Source of the DNA: Macrostomum lignano
Lineage: Eukaryota
Direction: 5' to 3'
Assembly: GCA_002269645.1 (NCBI GenBank)
Contig: NIVC01001978.1
Coordinates: forward strand, 62,001 to 126,000
DNA: 64,000 nt
In this document: positions 1 to 55,448 of the stretch, piece after piece
Numbering within the stretch: position 1 is the first letter of the stretch
Layout of the letters: every line of letters begins with the position of its first letter
Program-made: the position numbers and the translations under genes
Notes under the pieces: model-generated
What the model was told of the DNA's origin: nothing
What the model saw: the letters and a program-made list of their open reading frames with translations, nothing else
Databases searched by the model: none

Positions 1-1295
1 TTAGAGAGACTGTGTAATGCCTGACAATTAGAGAGTCTGTGTAATGCCTGACAATTAGAGAGACTGTGTAATGCCTGACAATTAGAGAGACTGTACATGC
101 CTGACAATTAGAGAGACTGTGTAATGCCTGACAATTAGAGAGACTGTGTAATGCCTGACAATTAGAGAGACTGTACATGCCTGACAATTAGAGAGACTGT
201 GTAATGCCTGACAATTAGAGAGACTGTGTAATGCCTGACAATTAGAGAGACTATGTAATGCCTGACAATTAGAGAGACTGTGTAATGCCTGACAATTAGA
301 GAGACTGTGTAATGCCTGACAATTAGAGAGACTGTGTAATGCCTGACAATTAGAGAGACTGTGTAATGCCTGACAATTAGAGAGACTGTGTAATGCCTGA
401 CAATTAGAGAGACTGTGTAATGCCTGACAATTAGAGAGACTGTGTAATGCCTGACAATTAGAGAGACTGTACATGCCTGACAATTAGAGAGACTGTGTAA
501 TGCCTGACAATTAGAGAGACTGTGTACATGCCTGACAATTAGAGAGACTGTGTAATGCCTGACAATTAGAGAGACTGTGTAATGCCTGACAATTAGAGAC
601 TGTGTAATGCCTGACAATTAGAGAGACTGTGTAATGCCTGACAATTAGAGAGACTGTACATGCCTGACAATTAGAGAGACTGTGTAATGCCTGACAATTA
701 GAGAGACTGTGTAATGCCTGACAATTAGAGAGACTGTGTAATGCCTGACAATTAGAGAGACTGTGTAATGCCTGACAATTAGAGAGACTGTACATGCCTG
801 ACAATTAGAGAGACTGTGTAATGCCTGACAATTAGAGAGACTGTGTAATGCCTGACAATTAGAGAGACTGTGTAATGCCTGACAATTAGAGAGACTGTGT
901 AATGCCTGACAATTAGAGAGACTGTGTAATGCCTGACAATTAGAGAGACTGTGTAATGCCTGACAATTAGAGAGACTGTGTACATGCCTGACAATTAGAG
1001 AGACTGTGTAATGCCTGACAATTAGAGAGACTGTGTACATGCCTGACAATTAGAGAGACTGTGTAATGCCTGACAATTAGAGAGACTGTGTACATGCCTG
1101 ACAATTAGAGAGACTGTGTAATGCCTGACAATTAGAGAGACTGTGTAATGCCTGGCAATTAGAGAGACTGTGTAATGCCTGACAATTAGAGAGACTGTGT
1201 AATGCCTGACAATTAGAGAGACTGTGTAATGCCTGACAATTAGAGAGACTGTGTAATGCCTGACAATTAGAGAGACTGTGTAATGCCTGACAATT
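1..1295. repeat. 27-bp tandem minisatellite (TTAGAGAGACTGTGTAATGCCTGACAA), with 25-bp variants; probably intronic in B9D2
   Basis: Direct periodicity; the ORF track shows 9-aa repeats (LSNCQALHS). Confidence 0.95.
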
Positions 1296-1429
1296 AAAAA
1301 GCCAGGACCGCTGTACATCCTGTGTGTGAGTGCGTGCCTCCACGTGTGTGCATGATGATGTATTCGAATACTACTGTACTACATGTAGCTCACGGCGAGT
1401 CTTCGGAATGGGCAGAATTGTGCTGCTTG

Positions 1430-1880
1430 AGGGGACCAGGGACTTTAGCACCAGGGTCTTTTAGCACCAGGGGCTTTTAGCAACAGAGGCTTTTTATCAG
1501 GACTTTAGGACTTTAGCACCAGGGTCTTTTAGCACCAGGGGCTTTTAGCAACAGAGGCTTTAGCACCAGGGGCGCCAGCACCAGGGGCGCCAGCACCAGG
1601 GGCGCCAGCACCAGGGGCGCCAGCACCAGGGGCGCCAGCACCAGGGGCGCCAGCACCAGGGGCGCCAGCACCAGGGGCGCCAGCACCAGGGGCGCCAGCA
1701 CCAGGGGCGCCAGCACCAGGGGCGCCAGCACCAGGGGCGCCAGCACCAGGGGCGCCAGCACCAGGGGCGCCAGCACCAGGGGCGCCAGCACCAGGGGCGC
1801 CAGCACCAGGGGCGCCAGCACCAGGGGCGCCAGCACCAGGGGCGCCAGCACCAGGGGCGCCAGCACCAAGGGGCTTTAGC
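1430..1880. repeat. 15-bp tandem repeat (CAGCACCAGGGGCGC) with degenerate left edge
   Basis: About 20 perfect copies at 1560-1865; 5-aa periodic ORFs. Confidence 0.95.
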
Positions 1881-1947
1881 CATACATGCCATATCATTTA
1901 AACGTCTTATACAGAACGGACACGATATCTATTTTTAAAAATCGCAG

Positions 1948-2238
1948 GTGTTCCACTACGACTGGGCCGGGCGCAGCTCATTGGTCGGCTACGGCTTCGC
2001 TCACGTGCCGTCGCAACCCGGCCTGCACAAAATCGACTGCGTCACTTGGCGCCCAACCGGCTCGTTCATGGATGAGGTCAGCTCAAAGTTTGTCGGCGGA
2101 GGAATCCAATTGAAACGACCCGACCTCGTCTACGAGTTGCACGACCGACGCAATGTGCACTCGACCGCCGGCGGCAAGGTGCACCTGGAGCTCAGCGTTA
2201 TTCTGCGCAACTTTGACAAGTTCGGCGTTGAGTGCTAA
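1948..2238 (+). CDS. B9D2: B9 domain-containing protein 2 (ciliary transition zone), terminal exon
   Basis: Acceptor ...ATCGCAG|GTG at 1947/1948. Peptide VFHYDWAGRSSLVGYGFAHVPSQPG...TWRP...FVGGG...AGGKVHLELSVILRNFDKFGVEC* matches the known B9D2 C-terminus (…GYGFCHVPSSPG…FVGGG…LLRNFDRYGVEC). Upstream exons lie outside the window. Confidence 0.92.
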   Translation: MFHYDWAGRSSLVGYGFAHVPSQPGLHKIDCVTWRPTGSFMDEVSSKFVGGGIQLKRPDLVYELHDRRNVHSTAGGKVHLELSVILRNFDKFGVEC

Positions 2239-2902
2239 GAGTTCACATAGTTTTCAAGCACAAAATCTCATTTTAAGACAATGATCGGTCGCATTGGGTG
2301 AACACAGAATTGCCTGTTTCTTAGCTATTGAACTTCCAGATAACAAAGCGAGTCATTGAGGAAGGGAAAATGCATCTTCTGTGACAACTTTCGTGTGTAT
2401 CAAAAAGTTTCGATTCATAGCTATCAAGTATTCTCTGGGAATAGACAATATCTCTTTTTACTCTCTTTCAGTGTCGATCATTGCAAGTTGCTAAATATTA
2501 TTTGTCAAATTTGACACAATTCCTGTCCGTATCATTATATATTATATTATATGTAATGTTAATGTTCGGATTTAGGCTTAACTAATGTAGATTTGGCATA
2601 TTAAATTACTACACAAAAATTCATGCTTAGTTGTACTTTTAAAAGCTGTATTTTTGTTTTAAATGTACTCTATGGTATTTTCTATTAAGCGGTAGCGTTG
2701 CAACACCTGCCATGGCGGTAAGTAAACCGTTTGTCAAAATCATTCCTTAATTTTGTGATTTGGAGCACTCCTGAAGTGAAGCGATTCATTTAAGCTTATT
2801 TGCGTATAAATATATATACCTGAATAAATATGATGTCGTACTGAATGGACTGCCTTTTAAACAATAATTATGAAAGTCTCTTTTCTATTTTTGAAGCTTC
2901 AA

Positions 2903-3190
<288 letters not shown>

Positions 3191-3210
3191 ATTGATCATA
3201 CATATGGTAT

Positions 3211-3325
3211 GAGTCCACCGTGACTGCTGAGTACTCTACTGCTACCTTCTCCGAGTCCACCGACCGCTGAGTACTCTACTGCTACCTTCTCCGAGTCCAC
3301 CGACCGCTGAGTACACTAATGCTAG
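3211..3325. repeat. Short ~40-bp tandem duplication (GAGTCCACCGACCGCTGAGTACTCTACTGCTACCTTCTCC), ~2.7 copies
   Basis: Direct inspection. Confidence 0.7.
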
Positions 3326-3739
3326 ATCCACAGGTACTACTAGCTGCACCACCAGTGGCAGTGATGCTGAACTGATTTATAGAATGGCCTCCTGCGCAGT
3401 AGCGACTCGGTGCTTTCGGAGCAGTGCTTTGATAACTTATGTGAGGACTCATTTTACGTTCAGAACTGTTTCGAAAAGAAATTTTTTTATTTTAAATAAT
3501 AGTAAATCAAATCTTAAGCTTGCACGAGAAAAGATTGCCTCGGCACTCTAAATTGTGTCTTTTAGACCGTATCTATAACAAAATATTATCTGTAAGTACA
3601 GAAGTTAAACTCTCATGGCCGTAGCGTGCCACTGTTGCGTAACAGTGCTAGGGCGTAAACGCGCGATGCCGGCGCACGTGGAAGAAGGCTAAGGCGAGAG
3701 CAAGGAAAGAGATAAGGTAGTACACTACACCTGCTGACT

Positions 3740-4430
3740 ATGATGGATTCTTACACCCGCTGGATCAAGGCCACTCCCGTCATGGACTTCCTCGCATCCT
3801 GGATTGCCCGCTTCGGACCACCGCTCACATTAATTAACGATCAAAGGTACACAGTTCCGAGCCGAGCTCATGCAAACCCTGGCGCAGCACCTGGTAATTC
3901 ACCATATCCAAACTTCGGCATATAACCCGCGAGCCAACGGCGTCGTCGAACGCGTTCATAGAACGTTGAAGATGGGCCTAAAAGCGCGCGCGGAAAATGC
4001 TGGTTGAGCCAACTGCCTCTCATACTTGTACCCCTTGGAATGCGTATCTTCGCAGACGAAAAGGGATCATCGCCTTTCTCACTTGTTACTGGAGAGCAAC
4101 TCATGGTTCCGCAAGTAGTAGCCGACACTTCGACTCTGACCGAGCTATCAACTCAGCTCCATCAACTGTTTTTCCACTACCGCCTACCGCGAACTCGTCC
4201 AGTCCCCACCAACATGCCGACCGCGCTGCATGGACTCCTGCACACACGTGTGGCTACGGTTGGATCGCTACGCTACCGCCGCCGCCACCGGAGACCCTTC
4301 CCAGAGCCTACTATTCCGTCTAATGATTCTCCAGACGCTAATACTCGTTTAAGAAGTTCTCGCCCTGTTAGATTTGCCTCCCAGCCGTCTATACAATACT
4401 TTACACCATCTGCAGTCGTCCCCTGACAAT
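3740..4430 (+). pseudogene. Degenerate Ty3/Gypsy integrase fragment
   Basis: Frameshifted pieces read DSYTRWIKATP...WIARFGPP..LINDQ and YNPRANGVVERVHRTLKMGLK...WLSQLPL...SPFSLVTG, i.e. rve core motifs. A purine tract GGGGGAGAG follows near 4536. Confidence 0.8.
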
Positions 4431-4762
4431 TAGATTCTAGAAAAGCAACACCATGACACTGCTGTTACCCATGTACGTGGTGCAACATTTCCTTCCTGTT
4501 GATTCTTTCTTTTAATCCTGGATGTACTCCGTTTTGGGGAGAGTTATTACATCGTTGTAGTTGTTTTTTTCCTTCGTTACCTTTCCGATCTGCCGAGTAC
4601 ATTGACAGCTCTGTACGCTGCTAGTAAGACCACCAATCTACATGCATATTTTAAGACAAAAAGTATACTCGCTTCAGAGCGCTATTAACCAAAACAACTT
4701 AATTCTCTTGTAGCAACCATGTAGCTACAGATGACGCGCAGTTTTTATAGTGCAGCAGCGAA

Positions 4763-5052
4763 CTAGACACGACCTCCATGCAGACACGACCTAGACACGA
4801 CCTCCATGCAGACACGACCTAGACACGACCTCCATGCAGACACGACCTAGACACGACCTCCATGCAGACACGACCTAGACACGACCTCCATGCAGACACG
4901 ACCTAGACACGACCTCCATGCAGACACGACCTAGACACGACCTCCATGCAGACACGACCTAGACACGACCTCCATGCAGACACGACCTAGCTAGACACGA
5001 CCTCCATGCAGACACGACCTAGACACGACCTCCATGCAGACACGACCTAGAC
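4763..5052. repeat. 28-bp tandem repeat (CTAGACACGACCTCCATGCAGACACGAC)
   Basis: About 10 copies. Confidence 0.93.
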
Positions 5053-5908
5053 ATGATCTATATGGTCGCTGCTGCTGGATAAAGCCGAAAGACGACAGCT
5101 CCTTTTGAAAAATCCTTTTTTTCGGTTTTTTAAAGCCCGATAATTTTTATACCGTCAGCGCCCATTTATTTTACACCAATCTCAAACATCAAGAAAATTG
5201 CAAAAATCATTTTTCAGATTTGAAAACTAAAACCAAGGCTTAGTGGCCAAAATTTATAAATAGTATATTTAGTAACTGATTTTGAGTTTATGTATTTATT
5301 AGTCAGATTAAATATAGTAGAAAATAGATCGATATAAATAATTAATGGAGTAGCTATAGGTTTTTTAAAATTGAAAACATTACTAATTACATTAGAATAC
5401 ATTACATTAGAAGGATGATTTTTCCTTCTTTGAATCGGAACTTCACTAGAAACGTTGAATTCAATGAAATAATAATCGGTTTTATGTATTAGTACTACTA
5501 CGAAAATTCTAAACTAATATCAATAGTAGGACTAACGCAAAGAAAAAACTTGGTTAGCTTATCGAACTAATTAAAATAAATTACGAATAACGATACCAGC
5601 TCTGGTTAGGTAAAATAAAGTTTAAATAGAAGTGAAAGAATAAAGTCGCGTGAAAAAAGATTTTGTCTTATTTAAATTGTTATTTTTTTTTGTTTTTTTG
5701 CGTAGCAATACGAGCGTATGACACCAATTATAGACACCTCCACTATTCGTTAATTCAATCTACTTTTGCTATTTAAAAAAAATCGAATTCAGCAGCACCA
5801 GCTAGAGGCTCGTCAAAACTTTTCAGACTATTTTACAAGTATCTATATCGTATTTCGTATTGTACGTGAAAATCATACAGCGGAGCTGTTGTTTACATAT
5901 TATTACAC

Positions 5909-6821
5909 TTTAGCGACTCGCAAAATGAAATGGCGCGAGAGAAAGTAAACTTTTATTTTTCACAATCGCATATAAATACTGCGCGACAGAGAGGCATGGG
6001 GAGGTGCGCATAGTCCGTGCCAGACCCTGCGGCTTAGCGCGCCGGCCGTCTGGGTGCACCCACCCCCCGGGCAGGGTGAGTCAGGCCGATTGAGTGCAGG
6101 TGCACTGCCCGCGCCTACAGCGGGCTGGTCTGGCCGCCACACAGCTCCCCCCAGCACCGAGCTATGCATCGAGAGTTGTCGGGCGACACCGGCGAGGCGG
6201 CTGGCGGCGGCTGGGGAGGGCAGCGGCGGGCTGGTCTGCTGTCGAAGGGCGGCCAGCTGAGGCCGCGGGACCGGCGGCAGGCGGCTGGCCCGCTGTTGTC
6301 GGGACAGCTCGAAGGTGCCGAGCAGTCGCTCCTTCAGCCTCTTGTACTTTTCTTCCCTCGGCGGATTCTCCAGCGCGTCGATGAGCCGCTCGGCGGTCTG
6401 CTGATCGAGCGCCGCGATGACGTGGCTGTACTTCGTGTCGTCATCGGAGATCTTCCGCAGAGCGAATTGAGCTTCGGCCTGAACAAACCAAATACGAGGT
6501 TGAGATGCCCAAAACGTGGGCAGTTTGAGTGCAACGGCTGACTCCGTAGTCATTCCTCAGCTACGGCTGGGGTTGTCGGGCTCACCAATTTAGCGACTCG
6601 CAAAATGAAATGGCGCGAGAGAAAGTAAACTTTTATTTTTCACAATCGCATATAAATACTGCGCGACAGAGAGGCATGGGGAGGTGCGCATAGTCCGTGC
6701 CAGACCCTGCGGCTTAGCGCGCCGGCCGTCTGGGTGCACCCACCCCCCGGGCAGGGTGAGTCAGGCCGATTGAGTGCAGGTGCACTGCCCGCGCCTACAG
6801 CGGGCTGGTCTGGCCGCCACA
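5909..6821 (-). mobile_element. Miniature (TRIM-like) non-autonomous LTR retrotransposon: two 233-bp LTRs, PBS, truncated gag, PPT, 4-bp TSD
   Basis: LTRs at 5909-6141 and 6589-6821 appear identical by eye. TSD ACAC at 5905-5908 and 6822-6825. PBS (minus) TGGTGAGCCCGAC resembles the complement of the tRNA-Trp 3' end. PPT GGGGGGAG lies beside the left LTR. Confidence 0.9.
6142..6553 (-). pseudogene. Truncated Gypsy-type gag N-terminal domain inside the miniature LTR element
   Basis: MTTESAVALKLPTFWASQPRIWFVQAEAQFALRKISDDDTKYSHVIAALD...KYKRLKERLL is the LPxFW...WFxQxEAQF gag motif; the ORF runs on into the PPT/LTR. Confidence 0.8.
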
Positions 6822-7261: not shown

Positions 7262-9458
7262 TCAGTTTTTTCTAATGGGACGCTTTGTTCCGCTCTGCAA
7301 GTTGGTCTGCTGGCCTTGAAGGAAGTCCAGCTCGTAGGTTTCCGGCCGCCCTGGAAACTGGACTCTCGCTTTGCAGCTGCCAGAGCCACTCGTGTAGGCT
7401 ACATATGCCTGCTGAATTTGACGCTGTACTAAGCTTTCAAATGGCTGCCAGATGCCGTTCTCGTTTTGGTACTGCCAAGTAGTGCTGACGCTGACGTTGA
7501 TGTCCACTTTCTGACGTTGGATAGACCGAACGTAACCAGTTTTCGCGTTCCTCTGTGTGTTAGCCGAGAAGTTCACAGTGTACGGTTGCGGAGTGTCGTC
7601 TATGTAACGCCTAATAGGCGGTGTGGTGAACTGCGCCGGTCCGCTGTGCATTCTGTACGCATCGTATTGCGATTCAAGCAAGCGATTAAATTCATCCGTG
7701 TAGGGTTCAAATCCGCCGCCATCTTTCTGCCAGTGCCACCGAAACGGAGATCGCCAGTTGTCGTTTTCAAATGATTCGGATATTTGAGACTGGTTGGCTA
7801 CTGGCTTAATGAAGTCCAATCGAGGAGTTGATGAGTCAAAGTACACCACTAAGACAGGCAAATTAAAAGACTTTGAGCCGTCTGTTGGGTTTTTAACCAC
7901 ATAGCAAAAGCCTTGTCTGTGTGTAATCGGACCTCCGTTCAAGAGAAAAGCGACGATCATCGCGCCGCAGTTTCTCGAGTAACCTCTAGAGATGCTGGGA
8001 GTCACTCCGAAATACTCTCCCGGGCCGCAAGCTTGGCCCGACCTCCTTTTAGGATCGAATCCCGAGTGGCAGATTTGTCTCAGTGCCTCACTGCTGCTTC
8101 CGTGAAAGGCGAAGATACCGTCTGACTCGTGCAATATGCCCCGATTCAGTGACAACAAGCCGCGGTGAAAAGTTTTGTACGCGGGAATTGGAGGATTGCT
8201 AAGCAGTCCAGGGTTGACGTCGATCGCACAGATCGGTGGCATGTCGGCAGGCCAGTTCTGTCTGACATAGACTTCTGCTGCTTTAATCAGCCGAGAAACT
8301 GGTTCCTTATCTGTAGATGCTTTTTTGAACTCTGAGCAGCTCAAACCTCTATGCATTACATCGTCTGCAACCTTGCAGTCAACACACACCCAGTGTTCAC
8401 AGCAAGCGCAACTTTCGTACGAGCCTTTATTAACGAATCCATGGCAGTCTTTAATGATACAGCGAGCAAGTTTCATTGAAGGATCCTGAGCCACATGCTG
8501 AGCAACCTGACGTATTGCAAGCTTCTCAAAGTTGTCACCAGTGAGTTTGCGAATTTCTCCTATGGTGATTGGTGTCTGGCATTTCGGACAGCAGATTGAG
8601 GCTGCAGAGACGCTTTGGAGCCAGTTTTCAATGCACTTGCAGTACGGGTGTCCGCATATGAAGAAATTTTCGACTGCTGCCTTTGATCTGCAGATAACGC
8701 ACGTCTTTTGGCTAAGTTTATTTTTGCTTCCAAGTTCAGCAACGAGATCGTTCACCTCTTTCTCGCAATCTGAAAGAACCGAAGAATCTTTTCTAGCAAA
8801 TAGCTCAATCTCCGAGGTGTGGAACAGAAACTTGATGAAGCAACGTTCGTCCCATTTTCGTTGCAGCGCCTTCAATTTGGAGTCTCCGGCAAGCCCATTT
8901 CGTAACAGCTGGGCAGTCGCAGCATTCAGAGGTATCAGACGGTAGCGGCTCTCGATTTTCGTGAACTCGTCAGCAATTTTTCGCATGAGAGAGCCTTGGC
9001 TTACTTTCGAACCAAATACCCGGAAGTTCCAATCGTCTCGGAATTCGCACACCAAATTGAGTTCCTTGGCCCAGGCATCGAACAGACCAGTCTTCTTGAT
9101 TTCGTAGAAAAGTGTTTTCTCTTTGTTGGATACGTGCCGAATAGTTATTGAGGAGAACAGACTTCGGAGCTTGTTCGCTACCAATTTTATCTTGTCATGC
9201 TGCGGACCGGACAGTCGGATTTCTAATGTTTTGTCAGGCTTCGGAACGCTCGCACTCTTTACAGTGGGATCGCCAGACCGCTCAATGAGGCTGTTTAGGT
9301 CCGGAAAAAGGTCAGGATGGCTGATGAAAACAGATTCAGTCCATTCCGCAGAGCAGCCAGCGATTGAACCTGCACGAATCTTGTTGTAAAATTCGACTGC
9401 ATGTTTTGATTCGCTAAACTTGACAAAAATAGTTCCGGAATAGTTGTACGAGTAGTTT
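7262..9458 (-). CDS. C-terminal part of helicase fusion gene: RRM-like, RING, IBR, PARP-type ADP-ribosyltransferase domain, two WWE domains
   Basis: Frame is open from ~9458 (NYSYNYSGTIFVKF, RNP1-like). RING CVIC..CGHPYCKC..CPKC; IBR CIIKDC..CACC..CVDC..H..LSC; ART FHGS..GFD..GPGEYFG..S.GY; WWE FRWHWQKDGGGFEPY and TWQYQNENGIWQPF. Confidence 0.82.
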
Positions 9459-10083
9459 TATCTTCCCAAGGCTTTATTTCAGGTGAAACCTGTTTAACGA
9501 AGGTTCCGCCGTTCTTTTTACTATTAAGACTAATAGAAAACGGTCCGATGTTGCACAAAACTGTACTCAATGATTTCATCAGATTGTCGCGCTCTGTTTC
9601 ACTGTTTAGTGTTAAAAGCGCCCTCGAAGCCCCGATTCCCGGTGGAGCTGGAGCACGTGACAAAATGCGAATCGAGTCTACGGTGTTCAAACGTCCTGAT
9701 TTCCTAATGAGACCTTTCACATCAGACTCTGTCCAATTTGCTGGCATATTCGAAATTAAGACTTTAAAATTTTCCTGGCGCCGTCTGCGCTTATTGGTGT
9801 GATGGATCTTTGCAATCGAGTCACTGTGTGCTCGAATAGTCTCCTCTTCAAAGCCGCTGGGAGCGGATATCAGAAGTTGAGCCAGTCCTTTGTCACTTTC
9901 AGCTGAGTCTGTGGCAACTTCGTTCTTCGATGATGGCACTTCTTTCTCAGTACGATTCGAAGTACAAATATATACCTCTTTTACTTGAAGGCCACATAGA
10001 AATGTAGCTCTGAACCCCTTCGTTTCAAGCACATGTTGTTCTTGTAAATATGTCAGCTTCGAATTGTCAATTAAAGACTTCAG
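9459..10083 (-). CDS. Middle segment of the same gene (RRM-like), in frame with the helicase ORF past a single TAG
   Basis: TAG at 10086-10084 is followed in the same frame by LKSLIDNSKLTYLQEQHVLETKGF...; FKVLISNMPANWTESDVKGLI is RNP2-like. A 1-bp loss in the A-run at 9456-9459 joins it to the C-terminal part. Confidence 0.7.
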
Positions 10084-13000
10084 CTAGGAACGAAGTTCGG
10101 AACTTTCCGAAGCTCTTGCGTAGACATCGATGCTTGCTTCATCCGCATTGTGCGACAGTACAATCCACCTTCGTTGTTCTTCCGAGATCTGTGACGATTC
10201 TTCATTGATTTTCGAATTGACTGTCTTAAACAAGTTCGAGCTCGCATTGGCCTCCGTAAATATCTTTTCTAAAGGATGCGACCTTCTATCAGACACAGTC
10301 GTCGGATCTTTGAGTGGGTGCAGCCCATCCACGATGTACATACCGGACACCATCTGCCTAACTCGTACTGCAACGAAGTACTCACAGTCCTGGGGGCGTT
10401 GTGCAAACACCGATGTGTTCGAAATCCTAGCTCGGATATTTGAGTCAACAATCTTCATGCCCTCTGACGGCAGATGCTTTACCAACAGACATGTCACCTG
10501 TTCCGGAATCACCTGCTCGAGACAGCTTCCAACAGCTTGAATTGGGTCTTCATAGCTGCTCTCAACCTTTTGAAGCTCTAAGTACCATTTACTTTTCTTT
10601 ATAGCCTTCAAGAAAGAGGTTCGCGACTTCTCAATGTGCTCCATGACCTTGTTATTGAGCCTGTTTGAGTTGCTGTGTCCAACCCGACATGACCTACAAC
10701 TATTCTGGAACTTTTTTGCCACTTTTCCGCAGCTTTTGCACCTTCCGTTGATCAATTTTCCGGCGTTAGACCACGAATCATAGACACTGACTTCGTAGAG
10801 AATGTCGCTTTCGTGAGCAAATGCTTCTAATGCTCTTTTCTGCAGTCCCTCTTTCTTCTCCTTGTCGCGTCCAAGGAAGAATATACTGCCAGGGGCTGTG
10901 AGGATGCAGGCAACCGTAACCGCCAATTCTAACTGACCGAAGGGCTGGTGAGCCCTGATTATGAAAGCACTCAAACGTGGATCGAGCCCGAGTTCTGCAA
11001 ACAGTTCACCTGCATTTGACAGCGACTCAACTCCGGACAGGCATCCAAGATCCATCAAAGTTTGGTACGAGTGAATCAGCATTTCTTCATTTGGCTTGTC
11101 CAGAAATGGAAACTCGAGCGGCTTTAACTTTAGTTTGATCAACAGCAGAACGACCAGATCCAACGAGGACCGCAGAATTTCGGGAACAAACTCAGCGCTC
11201 TTTAAAACGTCCTCAGAGTACAGCCGAACACAGTGACCTGGTGCAGTTCGTCCCGCTCGACCCTTTCTCTGGTTGGCGGCTGACTGCGAAATCTGCCGCA
11301 GCTCCAACACTGTGATGCGCCTCTTTGCGTCAAAGCGTGACTCCTTCGCCAGACCGGAGTCGACCACCAACCTGACTCCGTTGATTGTCAGTGACGTCTC
11401 AGCAACATTAGTGCAAAACACCACTAAGCGATCGGAGTCTTGACTCGGCTTGAAGTCCAGAACCTTGACCTGCTCCTCCCGAGGAAGAGACCCGTACAGA
11501 GGCAGTGCCACGCAGTTGTCTTCCGTCTGCTGCTGCTGAAACGCCTTGATGGCCTGCTGGATTTCCCGCTCTCCGGGCAGAAAGACGAGCGCATAACCGT
11601 CGCTGTGGTCTCGCAGCGCTTTAATCAGACTTGGCACCAGATGACTTTTGATAAACACATCCGGGTTTGAATCAAAAGCCGGAGGAATGTACTGCAGTGA
11701 GACATCGTACATTCTTCCTGGAATGTCAAGGACGCCGCAGTTGAAGAAATCTCGAAACAACTGTGGATCGATCGTGGCCGATGCTATCACAACATAGAAA
11801 TTGTCAGGTCTCTTGATGCGAATGAGCTTGGCAAGTCCAAGAACAATGTCAACATTCAGCGATCGCTCGTGAGCTTCATCGACGATTAGCACTGACACAT
11901 TGTCCAATGATTCATTGCTTTGGCAATACCGAATGAGACACGACTCTGTCATGAACATTATGCCAGAGCCTGGTGCACTGTTCTCGCCACCGACTTTGTA
12001 CCCGACTGACTCTCCGACATCGCATCCGTCGAATTCTTGGGCCACTCGATGCGCAATCGAGACCGCCGCCATCACGCGAGGCTGTGTGCAGATAACAAGG
12101 CCTCCGAAGCACTCCGCTGCGTACTGCGGCAGCTGGGTGGTCTTTCCACTTCCTGTCTCTGCCCTTACAATCAGAACTTTTTCATTTTGAAGCCGTTCAA
12201 GGAACTGTTCTCGATAGTTCAGTACTGGCAAGCGGTTCGCTTCTCTGTCAATTCTTCGCTGGTGATCCGATTTAAGCGCTGAGCTTCTCTGAAGCGGCGC
12301 CTTCGAAACGCTACTCATACCTGGGTGTAAACCTGCACAATCTCTGTTCCTGCAGTCGCTTCCTTGAGTACACGGTTTGGGGCGTCTCGGAGAGTGCGAG
12401 CAATCGCAAGCGACATCGCGACAGGCTAGACCGTTGGGGCAAGGGTTCCAAGCCTCGGGATGTAGGCATTCGCAAATGTGATTCCAACACCGGTCTCCGT
12501 ACTTGCAGGGACTGCATCGACCAGGCGGATGCACCAATGCGCAATTGAAGTCGTCGCACGACTCGCCCCAATCGCAAAATTGCCTGCTCCGGTTTTTCGG
12601 ATGAAGCCATGGACAGAAGGGCAGCTTGCAACGATCTCTCCGCTTGCATTTTTTACGTCTACCAGCTTCGTGCAGTTTCTCGCACTCATACTCAGTGCAC
12701 AGCTTTCCCTTCTCGCATAGCTCTCTAGAAGCTGGGTGCAGTTTTTTGCAGTCAAATTTCAGGCACTTGGCTCCTTCTTCGCAAGGATTCTCACGAGATG
12801 CTGGGTGCAACTTTGGACAGTCGAAATCCTGACAGTCCTCGGCGAATTCGCAAGCCTGACGCTTCTCGGAGTGCAGGAAGCTGCACTCAAATTTGGTGCA
12901 CTTATCGCCGAATTGACAGCGCTTTGTGCGACCAACTGGGTGGCTCTTCGTGCAGTCGTACTGGTCGCAATCCACAGAGCACTCGTTTGGATCAGAGAAA

Positions 13001-14046
13001 TCGCTTCCCCAGCCTTGTGGGTGCCCAAAAAAGCAGCAGGAATCCTCGCATAACTCGGATAACGGACAGTCTAAGTGCTGGAAGCGGCATTCTGATTCGT
13101 ATCGACAAGCTCCGAATCGAAAGAGATTGCACAAGACCAGTCTGCGACCCACGCTACGACCAATCTGCGTTTTAACGTTCGCAGGGTGACCCAGGCAACA
13201 CTCATCATCGTCGCAATCTTCTTCCATCGGACAAGACATATGAATGTGCTTACAGTCATTGTCAAATTTACATGTGCCCAAAATATTGTACTTGCATAAA
13301 ATGCCTTTATCATGATTGGTAGTCTCACTCTGGGTAGTGCTCACGGAAGACTGCGAGCTTGAGGCCTCGGCGCCGAGCATCTCAGTTTGCTGGCGTAGTG
13401 TGTCTCCATGCAATCTAGAACGATCTTCAGTACGACGGTCAGCTTTGAAAATCAGTTTACACTTCACTACAAATTTGTTATTGCCTATTTTGAAATTGTC
13501 ATACTCCCGTATAAACTTGTGTGCCTCAGACTCGGAAAGGTCATTTAGAAAAGCGCACCAGGCAGTCTTGTCACGCTGCTTCGACTCTGGGAGCACCACA
13601 AATTTCTCGGCGCTCTGCTTGAATGTCGCGGCCAGAAACTTGGTCGATGCATTTGGCGGAAGTCCCGATAATTCCACGGTGTATATCAAAGGCTGCGGTT
13701 GGGTGGCCTTGCCTTTATTATTGTCACTTCCCTTCAATTTTGACGAGCTTGTTTTGCATCCTATAGGGTGCTTTCCACCGGGAAATGTTTTATTATTCCA
13801 TCTTTCCTGAAAACTTTCTGCCTCGCTTTCCGTGAGTCCATTTAGATAAGCGCACCAGGCAGTCTTGTCCCGCTGCTTGGGCTCGGGAAGAATCACGAAC
13901 TGACCTGCCGACTGTCGGAACCGATCGACTAGGCTCTGACTGGACACGCCGGGTGGCAGGCCAGTAATCTGCACGCTGAAGAGTTCCTGTGGACTGCTGG
14001 TGGCTTGTCGTCGCACTCCTGAGGCGGCGCCCCTCGGACGCTGCAT
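10084..14046 (-). CDS. N-terminal part: 2 RRM-like repeats, 14 CCCH zinc fingers, DEAH-box (HrpA/Prp-type) RNA helicase with HA2/OB region
   Basis: Helicase motifs AETGSGKTTQLPQY, CTQPR, DEAHERS, SAT, FLPGE, TNVAETS, QRKGRAGR. Tandem C-x5-C-x4-C-x3-H fingers plus two C-x7-C-x5-C-x3-H fingers. Confidence 0.9.
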   Translation of the reverse strand: MQRPRGAASGVRRQATSSPQELFSVQITGLPPGVSSQSLVDRFRQSAGQFVILPEPKQRDKTAWCAYLNGLTESEAESFQERWNNKTFPGGKHPIGCKTSSSKLKGSDNNKGKATQPQPLIYTVELSGLPPNASTKFLAATFKQSAEKFVVLPESKQRDKTAWCAFLNDLSESEAHKFIREYDNFKIGNNKFVVKCKLIFKADRRTEDRSRLHGDTLRQQTEMLGAEASSSQSSVSTTQSETTNHDKGILCKYNILGTCKFDNDCKHIHMSCPMEEDCDDDECCLGHPANVKTQIGRSVGRRLVLCNLFRFGACRYESECRFQHLDCPLSELCEDSCCFFGHPQGWGSDFSDPNECSVDCDQYDCTKSHPVGRTKRCQFGDKCTKFECSFLHSEKRQACEFAEDCQDFDCPKLHPASRENPCEEGAKCLKFDCKKLHPASRELCEKGKLCTEYECEKLHEAGRRKKCKRRDRCKLPFCPWLHPKNRSRQFCDWGESCDDFNCALVHPPGRCSPCKYGDRCWNHICECLHPEAWNPCPNGLACRDVACDCSHSPRRPKPCTQGSDCRNRDCAGLHPGMSSVSKAPLQRSSALKSDHQRRIDREANRLPVLNYREQFLERLQNEKVLIVRAETGSGKTTQLPQYAAECFGGLVICTQPRVMAAVSIAHRVAQEFDGCDVGESVGYKVGGENSAPGSGIMFMTESCLIRYCQSNESLDNVSVLIVDEAHERSLNVDIVLGLAKLIRIKRPDNFYVVIASATIDPQLFRDFFNCGVLDIPGRMYDVSLQYIPPAFDSNPDVFIKSHLVPSLIKALRDHSDGYALVFLPGEREIQQAIKAFQQQQTEDNCVALPLYGSLPREEQVKVLDFKPSQDSDRLVVFCTNVAETSLTINGVRLVVDSGLAKESRFDAKRRITVLELRQISQSAANQRKGRAGRTAPGHCVRLYSEDVLKSAEFVPEILRSSLDLVVLLLIKLKLKPLEFPFLDKPNEEMLIHSYQTLMDLGCLSGVESLSNAGELFAELGLDPRLSAFIIRAHQPFGQLELAVTVACILTAPGSIFFLGRDKEKKEGLQKRALEAFAHESDILYEVSVYDSWSNAGKLINGRCKSCGKVAKKFQNSCRSCRVGHSNSNRLNNKVMEHIEKSRTSFLKAIKKSKWYLELQKVESSYEDPIQAVGSCLEQVIPEQVTCLLVKHLPSEGMKIVDSNIRARISNTSVFAQRPQDCEYFVAVRVRQMVSGMYIVDGLHPLKDPTTVSDRRSHPLEKIFTEANASSNLFKTVNSKINEESSQISEEQRRWIVLSHNADEASIDVYARASESSELRS

Positions 14047-21602: not shown

Positions 21603-21918
21603 TTTGATTTAGAACAATGGTTAATATAGACTATATTTTTATACTATTATTACCATAGATTAGTATCATTTTGATTGCCAATATGCAAATTTTCTACAAG
21701 TGCAATACTATTTGCTATATACATGGTTAGTATTTGGAAATTCTAAGACACTAATCTAATAACCTAATGAATCCTCCTAAAACACTGGCTGGCAAACTCC
21801 AGCCCATGGACCACATGTGGCCCGCAAAGCCTCTCTATCTGGCCCTCGTGTTCTTTGAAACTTCAATATAGAAATGTGGGCCTCTGTGTTTTTGTCTCTT
21901 CTTAGATCTCTTCGATCA

Positions 21919-24900
21919 CCTTTCTCTTCTCTTCTCCTCTTCTTTTCCTCTCCTTCCTCCCCTCCCTTCCCTCCTCTCTCCTCTCCTTCCTCCCCTCCCT
22001 TCCCTCCTCTCTCCTCTCCTTCCTCCCCTCCCTTCCCTCCTCTTTCCTCTCCTTCCTCCCCTCCCTTCCCTCCTCTCTCCTCTCCTTCCTCCCCTCCCTT
22101 CCCTCTTTCCTCTCCTTCCTCCCCTCCCTTCCCTCCTCTCTCCTCTCCTTCCTCCCCTCCCTTCCCTCTTTCCTCTCCTTCCTCCCCTCCCTTCCCTCCT
22201 CTCTCCTCTCCTCTTCTCTTCCTCCTCTTTCCTCTCCTCTTCTCTTCCTCCTCTCTCCTCTCCTCTTCTCTTCCTCCTCTTTCCTCTCCTCTTCTCTTCC
22301 TCCTCTTTTCTCTCCTCTTCTCTTCCTCCTCTCTCCTCTCCTCTTCTCTTCCTCCTCTCTCCTCTCCTCTTCTCTTCCTCCTCTTTCCTCTCCTCTTCTC
22401 TTCCTCCTCTTTTCTCTCCTCTTCTCTTCCTCCTCTCTCCTCTCCTCTTCTCTTCCTCCTCTCTCCTCTCCTCTTCTCTTCCTCCTCTCTCCTCTCCTCT
22501 TCTCTTCCTCCTCTCTCCTCTCCTCTTCTCTTCCTCCTCTTTCCTCTCCTCTTCTCTTCCTCCTCTCTCTCTCTCTTCTCTTCCTCCTCTCTCCTCTCCT
22601 CTTCTCTTCCTCCTCTTTCCTCTCCTCTTCTCTTCCTCCTCTCTCCTCTCCTCTTCTCTTCCTCCTCTCTCCTCTCCTCTTCTCTTCCTCCTCTTTCCTC
22701 TCCTCTTCTCTTCCTCCTCTTTCCTCTCCTCTTCTCTTCCTCCTCTTTCCTCTCCTCTTCTCTTCCTCCTCTTTCCTCTCCTCTTCTCTTCCTCCTCTTT
22801 CCTCTCCTCTTCTCTTCCTCCTCTTTCCTCTCCTCTTCTCTTCCTCCTCTTTCCTCTCCTCTTCTCTTCCTCCTCTTTCCTCTCCTCTTCTCTTCCTCCT
22901 CTCTCCTCTCCTCTTCTCTTCCTCCTCTTTCCTCTCCTCTTCTCTTCCTCCTCTCTCCTCTCCTCTTCTCTTCCTCCTCTTTCCTCTCCTCTTCTCTTCC
23001 TCCTCTCTCCTCTCCTCTTCTCTTCCTCCTCTCTCCTCTCCTCTTCTCTTCCTCCTCTTTCCTCTCCTCTTCTCTTCCTCCTCTTTCCTCTCCTCTTCTC
23101 TTCCTCCTCTTTCCTCTCCTCTTCTCTTCCTCCTCTTTCCTCTCCTCTTCTCTTCCTCCTCTTTCCTCTCCTCTTCTCTTCCTCCTCTTTCCTCTCCTCT
23201 TCTCTTCCTCCTCTTTCCTCTCCTCTTCTCTTCCTCCTCTTTCCTCTCCTCTTCTCTTCCTCCTCTCTCCTCTCCTCTTCTCTTCCTCCTCTTTCCTCTC
23301 CTCTTCTCTTCCTCCTCTCTCCTCTCCTCTTCTCTTCCTCCTCTTTCCTCTCCTCTTCTCTTCCTCCTCTTTTCTCTCCTCTTCTCTTCCTCCTCTCTCC
23401 TCTCCTCTTCTCTTCCTCCTCTCTCCTCTCCTCTTCTCTTCCTCCTCTTTCCTCTCCTCTTCTCTTCCTCCTCTTTCCTCTCCTCTTCTCTTCCTCCTCT
23501 CTCCTCTCCTCTTCTCTTCCTCCTCTTTCCTCTCCTCTTCTCTTCCTCCTCTCTCCTCTCTCTTCCTCCTCTCTCCTCTCCTCTTCTCTTCCTCCTCTTT
23601 CCTCTCCTCTTCTCTTCCTCCTCTTTCCTCTCCTCTTCTCTTCCTCCTCTCTCCTCTCCTCTTCTCTTCCTCCTCTTTCCTCTCCTCTTCTCTTCCTCCT
23701 CTCTCCTCTCCTCTTCTCTTCCTCCTCTCTCCTCTCCTCTTCTCTTCCTCCTCTTTCCTCTCCTCTTCTCTTCCTCCTCTTTCCTCTCCTCTTCTCTTCC
23801 TCCTCTCTCCTCTCCTCTTCTCTTCCTCCTCTTTCCTCTCCTCTTCTCTTCCTCCTCTTTCCTCTCCTCTTCTCTTCCTCCTCTTTCCTCTCCTCTTCTC
23901 TTCCTCCTCTTTCCTCTCCTCTTCTCTTCCTCCTCTTTCCTCTCCTCTTCTCTTCCTCCTCTCTCCTCTCCTCTTCTCTTCCTCCTCTTTCCTCTCCTCT
24001 TCTCTTCCTCCTCTTTCCTCTCCTCTTCTCTTCCTCCTCTTTCCTCTCCTCTTCTCTTCCTCCTCTTTCCTCTCCTCTTCTCTTCCTCCTCTTTCCTCTC
24101 CTCTTCTCTTCCTCCTCTTTCCTCTCCTCTTCTCTTCCTCCTCTCTCCTCTCCTCTTCTCTTCCTCCTCTTTCCTCTCCTCTTCTCTTCCTCCTCTTTCC
24201 TCTCCTCTTCTCTTCCTCCTCTCTCCTCTCCTCTTCTCTTCCTCCTCTTTCCTCTCCTCTTCTCTTCCTCCTCTTTCCTCTCCTCTTCTCTTCCTCCTCT
24301 TTCCTCTCCTCTTCTCTTCCTCCTCTCTCCTCTCCTCTTCTCTTCCTCCTCTTTCCTCTCCTCTTCTCTTCCTCCTCTTTCCTCTCCTCTTCTCTTCCTC
24401 CTCTTTCCTCTCCTCTTCTCTTCCTCCTCTTTCCTCTCCTCTTCTCTTCCTCCTCTTTCCTCTCCTCTTCTCTTCCTCCTCTCTCCTCTCCTCTTCTCTT
24501 CCTCCTCTTTCCTCTCCTCTTCTCTTCCTCCTCTTTCCTCTCCTCTTCTCTTCCTCCTCTTTCCTCTCCTCTTCTCTTCCTCCTCTCTCCTCTCCTCTTC
24601 TCTTCCTCCTCTTTCCTCTCCTCTTCTCTTCCTCCTCTTTCCTCTCCTCTTCTCTTCCTCCTCTCTCCTCTCCTCTTCTCTTCCTCCTCTTTCCTCTCCT
24701 CTTCTCTTCCTCCTCTTTCCTCTCCTCTTCTCTTCCTCCTCTTTCCTCTCCTCTTCTCTTCCTCCTCTTTCCTCTCCTCTTCTCTTCCTCCTCTTTCCTC
24801 TCCTCTTCTCTTCCTCCTCTCTCCTCTCCTCTTCTCTTCCTCCTCTCTCCTCTCCTCTTCTCTTCCTCCTCTCTCCTCTCCTCTTCTCTTCCTCCTCTTT

Positions 24901-24936
24901 CCTCTCCTCTTCTCTTCCTCCTCTCTCCTCTCCTCT
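21919..24936. repeat. ~3-kb pure polypyrimidine/polypurine tract, 26-bp unit, in DAW1 intron 1
   Basis: No A or G seen on the + strand over the interval; period 26 (TCCTCTTTCCTCTCCTCTTCTCTTCC). Confidence 0.95.
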
Positions 24937-25127
24937 GGTCCTCCTCTTCTTTGTTCCCTTGGCGACCATTGCCCTAAAATAACCAATTTTCCAAAATGCC
25001 ACATACTTTTCCATTTCTACCTGATTAATCTATTTATGATAAAATATTTCTTTGCAAGTCTGCATGTTATGACTACTTGTTTAAGTTTAGATAATATTTA
25101 ACTTACATAAAAAATCCGGTTTTGTAG

Positions 25128-25451: not shown

Positions 25452-26005
25452 AAGACAGACACAATGATAGACAGAAGGCAGACACAATGTCAGACAGAAG
25501 ACAGACACAATGGCAAACAGAAGACAGACACAATGGCAAACAGAAGACAGACACAATGGCAGACAGAAGTCAGTCACAATGGCAGACAGAAGACAGACAC
25601 AATGGCAGACAGAATGGCAGACAGAAGGCAGACACAATGGCAGACAGAAGGCAGACAGAAGACAGACACAATGACAGACAGAAGGCAGACACAATGGCAG
25701 ACAGAAGGCAGACACAATGTCAGACAGAAGGCAGACACAATGGTGCAGACAGAAGACAGACACAATGACAGACAGAAGGCAGACACAATGGCAGACAGAA
25801 GGCAGACAGAAGGCAGACAGAAGACAGACAGAAGACAGACACAATGGCAGACACAATGGCAGACAGAAGACAGACACAATGGCGGACAGAAGGCAGACAG
25901 AAGGCAGACAGAAGACAGACACAATGGCAGACAGAAGGCAGACACAATGGCAGACAGAAGACAGACACAATGGCGGACAGAAGGCAGACAGAATGGCAGA
26001 CACTT
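25452..26005. repeat. ~23-bp purine-rich tandem repeat (AGACAGAAGGCAGACACAATGGC) filling DAW1 intron 3
   Basis: Direct periodicity. Confidence 0.9.
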
Positions 26006-26099
26006 TTGCATTAATCTGAGCCAATCCATCTTATTAGAAGCTAAACACCGAAAGCAAACAATTCAACCTACAATCAATTTTTCCAACCGCAATGTCCAG

Positions 26100-26699
26100 G
26101 TGCTGCGAGCCCACATCCTGCCATTGACAAACGTAGCCTTCAACAAGAACGGCACGGAGTTCATCACCGGCTCCTACGATCGAACCTGCAAAGTGTGGGA
26201 CACCGGATCTGGCGAGGAGAAATTCACACTAGAAGGTCATCGCAATGTAGTTTACGCCATCGCCTTCAACCTGCCCTACTCTGACAAGATTGGCACTGGT
26301 AGTTTTGATAAAACTGCCAAACTGTGGTCTGCCGAGAGGGGCACACTGCATCACACGTTTCGCGGTCACACAGCTGAGATTGTCACTCTGCAGTTTAATC
26401 CCACCTCTACTATGCTGGGCACTGGCTCAATGGATACTCAAGCTAAGCTGTGGGACGTTGAGACCGGAGTGGAGCTGTGCACATTGAACGGGCACACAGC
26501 CGAAGTGATCGGGATGCAGTTTAGTCAGCAAGGCTCGGACGTTCTAACGGCTAGTTTTGATCACACAGTCTGCCTGTGGGACTCGCGCAGCGGCAAACGA
26601 ACTCAACAGTTGGTCAGTCATACAGCTGAGATCTCCGCCGCCGTGTTCAACTGGGATGCCACTCTGGTGGCTACCGCGTCTATGGACAAGAAAGTCAAG
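26100..26699 (+). CDS. DAW1: DAW1 exon 4 (WD40 repeats)
   Basis: [50 protein letters not shown]..; donor AAG|GTGAGT. Confidence 0.95.
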
Positions 26700-26789
26700 G
26701 TGAGTTCCACATGTTCGATGTGGGGGCTGCTGTGAGGGATAGGGGTCATATAGCGGACAGGTGGGCAACAAAGGTAAATCAATTCTAAA

Positions 26790-51900: not shown

Positions 51901-52043
51901 AAACCCTCATTCCATGCTTTGGTTGTACTCTATCTTGCTGTGGCGGGTACAGCGTGAGGTCTTTAGATCTAGAACGCTAGAACGCCGCAAGAAGGTCCCG
52001 CCACCTCCTGTTACGTTGATGGCTGAGACTTTGTTAAGGCCTG

Positions 52044-52270
52044 AGTTCCTGCGAAAGGGCTGCTGTGTGGGGGTTGGATTCGGGGTTCGGATTGGTTATT
52101 GCTATGGAGCGCGAGCTGGTTTCTAAATGGCTGAGTGGTCCCCGGAAGGGCTCTTGATTTGCCAATAGTTCCTGCCAGAGGGCTGTTGTGTGGGGTTGGA
52201 TTCGGGGTTCGGATTGGTTATTGCTATGGAGCAAGAGCTGGTGTTACTTACCAACTCCCGTCGTATATAA
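52044..52270 (+). promoter_or_regulatory. Duplicated ~77-bp element with CCAAT (ATTGG) boxes followed by TATATAA
   Basis: Repeats at 52044-52120 and 52167-52242; TATATAA at 52264-52270, upstream of the plus-strand ORF. Confidence 0.5.
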
Positions 52271-52319
52271 TCTCGCGCACAGCCGGAAGGAAAGCTCACA
52301 GTTTTTGACAGTGAACAAA

Positions 52320-54040: not shown

Positions 54041-54042
54041 CT

Positions 54043-55418: not shown

Positions 55419-55448
55419 GTTTAACTCAGTGCAGATACTGAGCCATTC

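Follow-up and report, generated by a model that had tools for sequence, protein, structure and literature searches.

A stretch of 64,000 nucleotides from the genome of Macrostomum lignano (assembly GCA_002269645.1, contig NIVC01001978.1, positions 62,001 to 126,000 of the forward strand; hereafter the window) carries on its minus strand a gene of about 2,260 codons. The whole of the evidence is best explained if it is a copy of a Macrostomum gene that has a single exon, has been duplicated in tandem and encodes a protein of about 2,260 residues working by the mechanism proposed below; to this reading as a whole we assign a probability of roughly 0.6. The domain order can be given with high confidence, i.e. 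two RRMs, about 14 CCCH fingers, a DEAH/RHA helicase with a zinc ribbon, further RRM-like domains, a possible KH-like pair, RING1-IBR, an ADP-ribosyltransferase (ART) domain and two WWE domains, and the same confidence applies to its membership of an old eukaryotic family. The mechanism itself is put forward more tentatively, at somewhat less than even odds.

Reading frame, second copies and selection

Three adjoining open stretches are found on the minus strand between positions 14046 and 7262. The first (14046 to 10087) has 1,320 codons, counted from the first ATG after the upstream stop; the second (10083 to 9298) resumes in the same frame past an in-frame TAG; and the third (9457 to 7265), in a different frame, has 731 codons before the final stop. 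Inspection of the overlap of the last two frames places the frame change at about 9430, within a probable fourth RRM-like unit (..GTIFVKFSESKHAVEFYNKI..). The joined conceptual product has 2,261 residues, including two placeholder residues, and the lesions in this copy number exactly two. A first-pass annotation of the window, made from its letters alone, had described one intronless frame of about 2,260 codons with two lesions, and the frame, the coordinates it gave (7262-14046) and the number of lesions all proved right. An exact look-up of the 1,320-residue product of this copy in protein records gave no entry.

The N-terminal half of the product is 93% identical to the M. lignano protein BOX15_Mlig016460g2 (P0020, 1,263 residues), and the region encoding the latter (contig NIVC01000353.1:567517-591308, here L001) was aligned to the window. 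It contains a complete second copy of the gene (copy 2, L001 9979-17237), with 95.3% identity to the window gene over 7.27 kb, and the tail of a further copy (copy 1, L001 1-2258), with 99.5% identity to the window. Both lesions of the window copy are missing from the complete paralogue, which has AAG (Lys) for TAG and six T for five, and which holds an unbroken open reading frame (ORF) of 1,050 codons extending from the helicase tail to the last WWE domain. The only lesion of the paralogue is a C-run that is 1 bp shorter (CCCC versus CCCCC at window position 10396). Because of this short run, the public annotation of the paralogue ends at 1,263 residues with out-of-frame residues, and the 1,050-codon ORF downstream of P0020 has been left unannotated. 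The remaining indels between the copies are all of 3, 6 or 12 bp.

Between the window gene and the complete paralogue the ratio of nonsynonymous to synonymous divergence (dN/dS; Nei-Gojobori method, 2,252 codons) is 0.27 (dN 0.029, dS 0.107; bootstrap 95% confidence interval 0.22-0.33), with 71, 55 and 174 differences at the three codon positions. This comparison, which had been suggested as a check in the first-pass annotation, thus indicates constraint. Given that the paralogue is free of the window lesions, that dN/dS is 0.27 and that no other indel has a length indivisible by three, we take the gene to be real and constrained, i.e. one intronless unit under purifying selection. The dS values vary along the gene, from 0.03 in the helicase core and the ART domain to 0.17-0.19 in the RRM and CCCH parts, which suggests gene conversion between the copies.

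The public annotation, in which the 1,263-residue helicase alone is called and the downstream 1,050-codon ORF carries no gene, implies that the helicase and the RING-ART-WWE parts are two separate genes. We consider this very improbable, since the end of P0020 is out of frame as a result of the short C-run, and once this is mended the frame extends 1,050 codons to the end of the WWE pair. Full-length relatives, moreover, number in the dozens, with full-length single proteins in at least ten genera, and the two rotifer homologue genes that were inspected (L002 of Adineta vaga and L003 of Adineta steineri) are exact single exons, one of 6,570 nt (2,189 codons plus stop) and one of 6,456 nt (2,151 codons plus stop). 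With the paralogue open across both lesions, separate genes and introns were rejected, and the original call of a single gene holds.

Window positions 1-5911, in which a B9-C2 domain gene lies, are colinear (~97%) with L001 17230-23366, i.e. with the DNA that follows copy 2, whereas the tail of the window gene itself hardly differs from copy 1. This suggests that the locus is a haplotype with one copy, a homeologue or a recombinant of the two-copy array. The intervening positions 5912-6821, about 910 bp on the 3' side of the gene, are missing after both L001 copies, the matching 3' flank ending at 6822. They include a gag-like DUF7041 ORF (5960-6553, 9e-23) and are probably a retroelement fragment inserted at the window copy. 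A tandem array at 4751-5059 also follows each gene copy in L001.

The window copy is either a very young pseudogene or mis-assembled. We rate as an even chance that it is dead or truncated, in which case the TAG and the frameshift are real, the locus gives a RRM-CCCH-helicase protein of at most 1,320 residues or nothing, and the full fusion is made from the paralogue only, if from any copy. Two independent disabling changes lie within 660 bp, and loss of one copy is frequent among recent gene duplicates; the ~910-bp insertion directly after this copy, missing after both L001 copies, points in the same direction. A homopolymer indel is a typical, indeed the commonest, assembly error, but a substitution yielding TAG (here A to T) is less so and is atypical of long-read assemblies. 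The frameshift is nevertheless just such a difference in homopolymer length, as is the sole lesion of the paralogue; the last 1,806 coding bases match the tail of copy 1 save for one synonymous change, with no indel; and a dN/dS of 0.27 implies that most of the divergence was built up under constraint. The earlier description of one intronless gene stands, with the correction that the copy in the window is interrupted and may be a pseudogene.

Domain architecture of the predicted protein

Pfam searches with the window protein alone missed the RING, IBR, HA2 and mid-region domains, for which family profiles and AlphaFold models were used. Profile or fold tests (Pfam, PDB profiles, Foldseek) upheld every domain call of the first-pass annotation (Table 1).

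The whole protein matches Pfam RRM_1 with an E-value of 1.1e-5 (25.6 bits versus a cut-off of 20.7), although the single stretches each remain below the cut-off. The first BLAST table had given the impression that the N-terminal RRM pair is unique to Macrostomum; this was dropped, as the alignment with the rotifer protein P0212 starts at residue 111 of the window protein and covers RRM 2. In the array that follows, 13 fingers fit the regular expression C-x5-9-C-x4-6-C-x3-H and one C-x3-C-x4-C-x3-H variant was recognized by eye, in agreement with the 14 fingers counted originally. Two have the spacing C-x8-C-x5-C-x3-H and the others C-x5-C-x4-C-x3-H, the latter being typical of the poly(A)-binding protein Nab2/ZC3H14. 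The Pfam zf-CCCH match is weak in the window protein (0.031), while a Nab2-like match (0.0025) was obtained for the Paulinella protein P0021, in which a comparable finger array aligns across the window CCCH region.

The helicase contains the full set of motifs, of which motif IV (FLPG) was recognized by inspection of the translated sequence. In the PDB, Prp43, DHX15, Prp22 and Prp16 are matched by the family profile at about 1e-123 (417 bits for Prp43/DHX15) and HrpA at 3e-113 (383 bits). Word-indexed searches had hinted at an HrpA-like or bacterial origin of the helicase, which these scores do not support; the earlier HrpA ranking arose from the choice of candidates in those searches. Matches to Prp43/DHX15 span profile positions 13-550 and run through the winged-helix/ratchet region, ending at about 520-550. 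No OB fold was detected by sequence in the C-terminal region of the helicase, and Pfam HA2_N was found in P0021 only. This region also carries an inserted zinc ribbon, conserved across the family alignment with two of its four cysteines invariant in four aligned members, for which we know of no counterpart in Prp43 or DHX15.

The 215 residues after the TAG were modelled with AlphaFold, the first 100 of them poorly, and contain a third RRM-like domain, the best Foldseek matches of which are the RRMs of DND1, U2AF65 and HuR (E-values 3.5e-4 to 2e-3). A fourth such unit appears to span the frameshift. Further downstream, two alpha/beta units resemble the tandem KH domains of IMP3 (KH1-2), FBP (KH3-4) and Krr1 in Foldseek (4e-3 to 1e-2), albeit that bacterial secretin N-domains score alike.

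The C-terminal 640 residues, modelled from 16 aligned family members (mean predicted local distance difference test score, pLDDT, 82), begin with this putative KH-like pair and continue with RING1 and IBR. Neither of the latter gave a Pfam match in the window protein, but all eight zinc ligands of each were located, those of the IBR being nearly invariant in the family; the family profile matches HOIL-1 RING1-IBR (2.4e-8), HOIP (1e-6) and RNF31 IBR (1.7e-7) in the PDB, and Pfam IBR is on record for the relatives P0003, P0005, P0006 and P0008. No Cys-rich segment that could represent RING2/Rcat follows the IBR in the window protein or in any relative examined, including P0021; in the model two helices follow and then the ART fold. 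Strictly speaking, then, the module does not qualify as an RBR, and it has no catalytic cysteine.

The ART domain is shortened (about 165 residues) and borderline in Pfam PARP, with 26.4 bits in the window copy (cut-off 26.7) and 28.4 in the paralogue. The family profile finds PARP12 (3e-8), PARP10, PARP14, PARP15 and ZAP as its best matches in the PDB, and Foldseek matches the catalytic domains of PARP12 and PARP10. Residues H361-G362, R381, Q384, E390, Y391 (in GEYFG), S399..Y402 and C427 (numbering of the 640-residue C-terminal ORF) are invariant across 16 divergent members; among them, H361 and Y391 correspond to the H and Y of the PARP motifs FHGT and GxGxYF, and S399..Y402 to the SxxY motif of PARP12. 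In PARPs the H, Y and S..Y residues contact nicotinamide adenine dinucleotide (NAD+). The catalytic Glu of the H-Y-E triad, on which poly-ADP-ribosylation depends, is absent, as judged from the alignment and the family profile: the Glu-bearing strand of PARP1 corresponds to FCYVV, and the third position is F426 or the invariant C427, the register being ambiguous by one residue. The first-pass annotation had likewise reported H and Y but no obvious Glu. An HMMER alignment of FCYVV to PARP14 'HSLIV' was judged a local artefact, as the last strands of PARP10, PARP12 and PARP14 (LPTHLITC, YPEYVIQY) line up with LPVLVVYF here, which puts FCYVV on the Glu-bearing strand, and as the strand order in the AlphaFold model agrees. 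Relative to these three PARPs, the segment that links the FCYVV strand to the strand before it has lost about 20 residues.

With a triad of H-Y-(F or C), the domain would at best be mono-ART-like. It could also be catalytically inert, a module for NAD+ or ADP-ribose binding or a scaffold as in ZAP/PARP13 or plant RCD1, so that the protein would be an RNA-guided RING ubiquitin ligase or an adaptor. Such inertness would fit the lack of the Glu, the loss of most of the acceptor-loop region in a domain of this size and the borderline Pfam score, and RCD1-type WWE-PARP proteins have been reported inactive (PMC2964712). We nevertheless consider it unlikely, since the set of invariant residues listed above fits an active site better than a scaffold, and human PARPs with an H-Y-I/L triad are active mono-ARTs (PMC2964712, PMC8883491).

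The protein ends in a tandem WWE pair, for which the family profile matches the DTX1 WWE pair (4e-11) and Foldseek retrieves DTX1 (9e-8), ZAP WWE1-2, TRIP12 and HUWE1. Reading of ADP-ribose by this pair is predicted from the WWE fold and signature.

Family distribution and proposed mechanism

A HMMER search with the C-terminal profile against 1.84 billion cluster representatives (clusters at 50% identity) gave at least 275 clusters matching the C-terminal module at E<=1e-30. When the joined window protein was compared with the sequences so obtained by local BLAST, no fewer than 30 representatives proved to have the helicase, RING1-IBR, ART and WWE domains, and most of these also match the putative KH region; some have an N-terminal CCCH array and some a C-terminal Pol-beta-type nucleotidyltransferase motif. 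Named matches come from five supergroups and include Paulinella micropora (Rhizaria), Chilomastix, Kipferlia, Carpediemonas and Paratrimastix (Metamonada), Pedospumella, Aphanomyces and Lagenidium (Stramenopiles), the diplonemid Namystynia, Pelomyxa (Amoebozoa) and, among animals, Macrostomum and the bdelloid rotifers Adineta, Rotaria and Didymodactylos, the rotifers with dozens of paralogues. No relative from fungi, plants, vertebrates or ecdysozoans was present among these named matches. This search for taxonomic spread and expansion, another of the checks suggested at the outset, indicates that the family is old, widespread and patchily distributed in eukaryotes, and uncharacterised.

In the databases the members bear only automatically assigned names ('RNA helicase', 'Poly [ADP-ribose] polymerase', 'HrpA-like RNA helicase', 'hypothetical protein'). 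We found no description of this architecture in the literature, though an earlier mention in ADP-ribosyltransferase reviews is possible; the 2010 survey of the PARP family mentions neither helicase nor IBR (PMC2964712). The earlier statement that no characterised protein is known to have the full combination is thus supported, with the qualification that the architecture is not rare but forms a widespread family in public databases. The novelty lies in the recognition and interpretation of the family, its sequences being already abundant there.

In a rough neighbour-joining tree of the helicase region, without support values and with the DHR1 and HrpA outgroups lost at the coverage filter, Macrostomum stands beside the bdelloid clade, consistent with vertical descent in Spiralia. 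The effector half appears exchangeable: the A. steineri protein P0212 (2,091 residues) retains the RRM, CCCH, helicase and linker parts (32% identity to window residues 111-1665), but ends in LSDAT/SLOG domains in place of RING1-IBR-ART-WWE. The sensor half, as far as these alignments go, is thus joined to alternative effector halves. In several protist members and two metagenome representatives (P0021, P0030, P0049, P0052, P0047, P0071, P0080, P0001, P0046 and P0062) the WWE pair is followed by the Pol-beta nucleotidyltransferase motif (GGxVRD...DxD; YGGFVRDWV..ANDID). This domain gave no Pfam match and is missing in the Macrostomum protein.

Among viruses, the WWE and PARP proteins A0A2H4UTH7 and A0A2H4UVQ9 of Bodo saltans virus (BFVD) match the C-terminal model with E-values of 7e-16 and 2.5e-13, over 350-600 alignment columns but with only about 16-19% identity, and are structural look-alikes; no sequence relatives were found among IMG/VR viral contigs. 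The immediate neighbours of the rotifer genes are an RNA-dependent RNA polymerase gene in A. vaga and a gene for an NYN-domain RNase with a faint RRM in A. steineri, both touching on RNA silencing or RNA decay, which may be coincidence.

We propose that the protein most likely functions in RNA-triggered ADP-ribosylation coupled to ubiquitin signalling, probably in the setting of RNA surveillance or of defence against viruses and transposons. In this mechanism the RNA-binding arrays and the helicase would select, and load onto, particular RNAs or ribonucleoproteins; the ART domain would thereby be placed so that it can attach a single ADP-ribose to a phosphorylated RNA end or to a protein bound there; the adjoining WWE pair would read the ADP-ribose mark; and RING1-IBR would bring a ubiquitin-charged conjugating enzyme (E2), the marked target or the enzyme itself then being ubiquitinated. 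The helicase motifs, the NAD+-contacting H, Y and S..Y residues and the RING1 and IBR zinc ligands are all conserved, and the protein is predicted to be competent in these respects. A role in defence or surveillance is suggested by the bdelloid paralogue expansions, the tandem copies in Macrostomum, the patchy distribution, the variable N-terminal RNA-binding arrays, the swapped effectors and the viral look-alikes.

Several points weigh against this reading. The window copy as read cannot encode the full protein, and dN/dS between the two copies bears no sign of an arms race, the selection being purifying and not diversifying. Gene neighbours in eukaryotes tell little about function. The tandem KH assignment is weak. 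The thioester mechanism of RBR ligases is closed to a module that has no RING2, and the ART domain, lacking the Glu and shortened in its acceptor-loop region, could be a pure binder of NAD+ or ADP-ribose like the inactive PARP domain of ZAP.

A different setting would be that of a housekeeping RNA-processing factor, active in splicing, ribosome biogenesis or the handling of poly(A) RNA. The helicase core is as close to Prp43/DHX15 as to anything, the finger spacing is that of Nab2/ZC3H14, and the Macrostomum copies are under purifying selection. Housekeeping factors, however, rarely show the loss or expansion seen here, with no fungal, plant, vertebrate or ecdysozoan relative among the named matches and dozens of paralogues in bdelloids, nor does the exchange of effector domains between paralogues favour such a role, which we regard as quite improbable. 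At the other extreme, the proposed coupling of ADP-ribosylation to ubiquitin signalling could be taken further, as a long shot: RING1-IBR-ART-WWE2 might be a new hybrid catalytic module, with the ART domain in place of RING2, in which the E2~ubiquitin on RING1-IBR and the NAD+ on the ART domain would meet on an RNA chosen by the helicase, to yield an ADP-ribose-linked ubiquitin mark on a protein or RNA end. Two invariant residues, the Cys where the Glu once stood and the Glu beside the active-site Tyr, would then be part of a new active site, and the family might be an ancient eukaryotic RNA-directed immune effector that predates ZAP/PARP12 and Deltex-PARP9.

That ADP-ribosylation and ubiquitination influence each other (RNF146-tankyrase, Deltex/DTX3L-PARP9, ubiquitin-ADP-ribose conjugates) and that RNA ends can be ADP-ribosylated has been found recently, in a few mammalian proteins working as partners on separate chains. 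The present family unites a predicted RNA selector, motor, ADP-ribose writer, reader and E2 recruiter on one chain, across most eukaryotic supergroups, and can be seen as a natural experiment on how these activities are wired; it also raises the question of what remains for an RBR module to do when another domain stands in for its catalytic RING2. Protists, and invertebrates without interferon, may have in this family an old defence system directed by RNA, for which Macrostomum (RNA interference by soaking, transgenesis) and bdelloid rotifers are workable test systems. As the M. lignano annotation cuts the gene down to 'helicase', frameshift-tolerant annotation is needed to reveal the architecture.

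Other features of the window and comparison with known systems

Positions 52000-64000 of the window contain, on the minus strand, a Polinton/Maverick-like element with the genes given in Table 1, several adjoining ORFs having no Pfam match. Long tandem arrays occupy positions 1-1296, 4751-5059, 21800-25100 and much of the region from 25 to 45 kb; offsets of the BLAST matches indicate a repeat unit of about 27 bp in the first of these arrays and of about 28 bp in the second. One purine-rich array of about 3.2 kb has a GC skew of -1.0, and this and many other low-complexity arrays give rise to spurious long ORFs. The WD40-repeat exon of 250 codons presumably belongs to a gene resembling a dynein-assembly WD-repeat gene.

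Table 1. Location of the gene, its lesions and domains, and of other features in the window (aa, amino acid positions)
Feature	Position	Strand	Basis or remark
Whole gene	7262..14046	-	~2,260 codons, single exon; ATG at 14046, stop at 7262-7264; two lesions
Lesion 1, in-frame TAG	10084..10086	-	AAG (Lys) in paralogue
Lesion 2, frameshift	9425..9429	-	TTTTT, TTTTTT in paralogue; comparison with paralogue
RRM 1, aa ~24-95	13762..13977	-	Pfam RRM_1, best stretch aa 27-90
RRM 2, aa ~121-195	13462..13686	-	internal repeat of RRM 1, seen in sequence; adds to summed Pfam RRM_1 score
CCCH array, 13-14 fingers, aa 251-574	12325..13296	-	regular-expression scan
DEAH/RHA helicase core, RecA1 + RecA2	11017..12249	-	Pfam DEAD 4e-10, Helicase_C 1.4e-12
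Helicase motif I, GSGKT	12139-12153	-	pattern search
Helicase motif Ia	12076-12087	-	pattern search
Helicase motif II, DEAH	11869-11880	-	pattern search
Helicase motif III, SAT	11773-11781	-	pattern search
Helicase motif V	11392-11412	-	pattern search
Helicase motif VI, QRKGRAGR	11248-11271	-	pattern search
Helicase C-terminal auxiliary region (winged-helix/ratchet)	10087..11016	-	PDB profile matches
Zinc ribbon C-x2-C...C-x2-C, aa 1103-1120	10687-10740	-	located by pattern
Third RRM-like domain (beta-alpha-beta-beta-alpha-beta), ~aa 1426-1511 of joined protein	9514..9771	-	AlphaFold, pLDDT 72-88
Two alpha/beta units, tandem KH-like (weak), aa 10-152 of 640-aa ORF	8729..9157	-	AlphaFold, pLDDT ~77-91
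RING1, C3HC4 (CVIC..CGH..CKC..CPKC), aa 162-202 of 640-aa ORF	8579..8701	-	zinc ligands 8/8
IBR, C6HC, aa 242-283 of 640-aa ORF	8336..8461	-	zinc ligands 8/8
PARP-type ART, shortened	7835..8299	-	Pfam PARP, family profile, Foldseek
Tandem WWE, protein end	7265..7753	-	Pfam WWE 1e-25, two stretches
Protein-primed family-B DNA polymerase, split in two ORFs	62072-63964, 60871-62046	-	PF03175
rve integrase	58831-59727	-	2e-13
Ulp1-like protease	56061-56534	-	weak match
WD40-repeat exon, five WD40 repeats	25980-26735	+	2e-41

Of the known systems, the DEAH/RHA helicases (Prp43/DHX15, Prp22/DHX8, HrpA) share with the family the RecA1-RecA2-winged-helix core and all motifs, but the family differs from them by the zinc-ribbon insert, an OB region that is not recognizable by sequence, and large N- and C-terminal extensions. 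The nearest layout is that of the Helicase (Plant I) RBR subfamily, of the Arabidopsis DEAH11/DEAH12 type, in which a DEAH helicase is likewise followed by a long linker and, towards the C-terminus, by RING1-IBR. The connection is drawn from a single environmental protein that is itself uncharacterised, P0237, which is the best non-family match of the family profile (492 bits versus ~440 for HrpA) and is similar to the window protein in the helicase (36% identity, 3e-85) and in RING1-IBR (28%, 5.6e-5), with a linker that is RRM-like by eye. In P0237 a normal RING2 follows the IBR at the place where the family has the ART domain, which agrees with the first-pass view that the latter occupies the position of RING2. 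Compared with this subfamily, the present family lacks RING2/Rcat, has ART and two WWE domains after the IBR, and carries additional CCCH and RRM arrays at its N-terminus. In the literature the 'Helicase' RBR subfamily is described as ancient and as lost several times among animals (PMC2904391); its distribution is patchy, as is that of the family described here.

With ZAP (PARP13), PARP12, PARP7 and PARP11 (clade 3E) the family has the CCCH, WWE and PARP kinds of domain in common. By profile and fold its ART domain is closest to PARP12, PARP10, PARP14 and PARP15, and its WWE pair resembles ZAP WWE1-2; the catalytic Glu is replaced in clade 3E too (PMC2964712). The likeness to the ZAP/PARP12/TIPARP group noted at first therefore extends to the kinds of domain but not to their arrangement: the ART domain precedes the two WWE domains, whereas in ZAP/PARP12 it follows; the fingers number 14, mostly C-x5-C-x4-C-x3-H, as opposed to 4-5 with other spacing; and the helicase and RING1-IBR stand between fingers and ART. 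The triad ends in F or C, where the ZAP/PARP12 group has I, L, Y or V, and the acceptor-loop region is shortened. As to possible substrates, PARP10, PARP11 and PARP15 ADP-ribosylate the 5'-phosphate ends of RNA (PMC8883491).

The combination of a RING, an ADP-ribose reader and an NAD+-using activity is also seen in Deltex (WWE-WWE-RING-DTC), DTX3L-PARP9 and RNF146-tankyrase, and the tandem WWE of DTX1 is the best WWE match of the family. The WWE domain of RNF146 allosterically activates its RING, and RING-DTC and DTX3L-PARP9 connect ubiquitin with ADP-ribose, a precedent for ADP-ribose-dependent ubiquitination and for ubiquitin-ADP-ribose conjugates (PMC8883491). No DTC domain was found in the Pfam, PDB or fold results for the window protein; unlike the Deltex group, the family has neither DTC nor macrodomain, and carries ART, WWE and RING1-IBR on one chain with an RNA helicase. 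It is thus not a strict RBR (no Rcat), not a ZAP/PARP12-type PARP (domain order, fingers) and not a Deltex protein (no DTC), and the description that suits it best is that of a helicase-RBR layout in variant form, which has gained a PARP12-like ART domain and a Deltex- or ZAP-like WWE pair.

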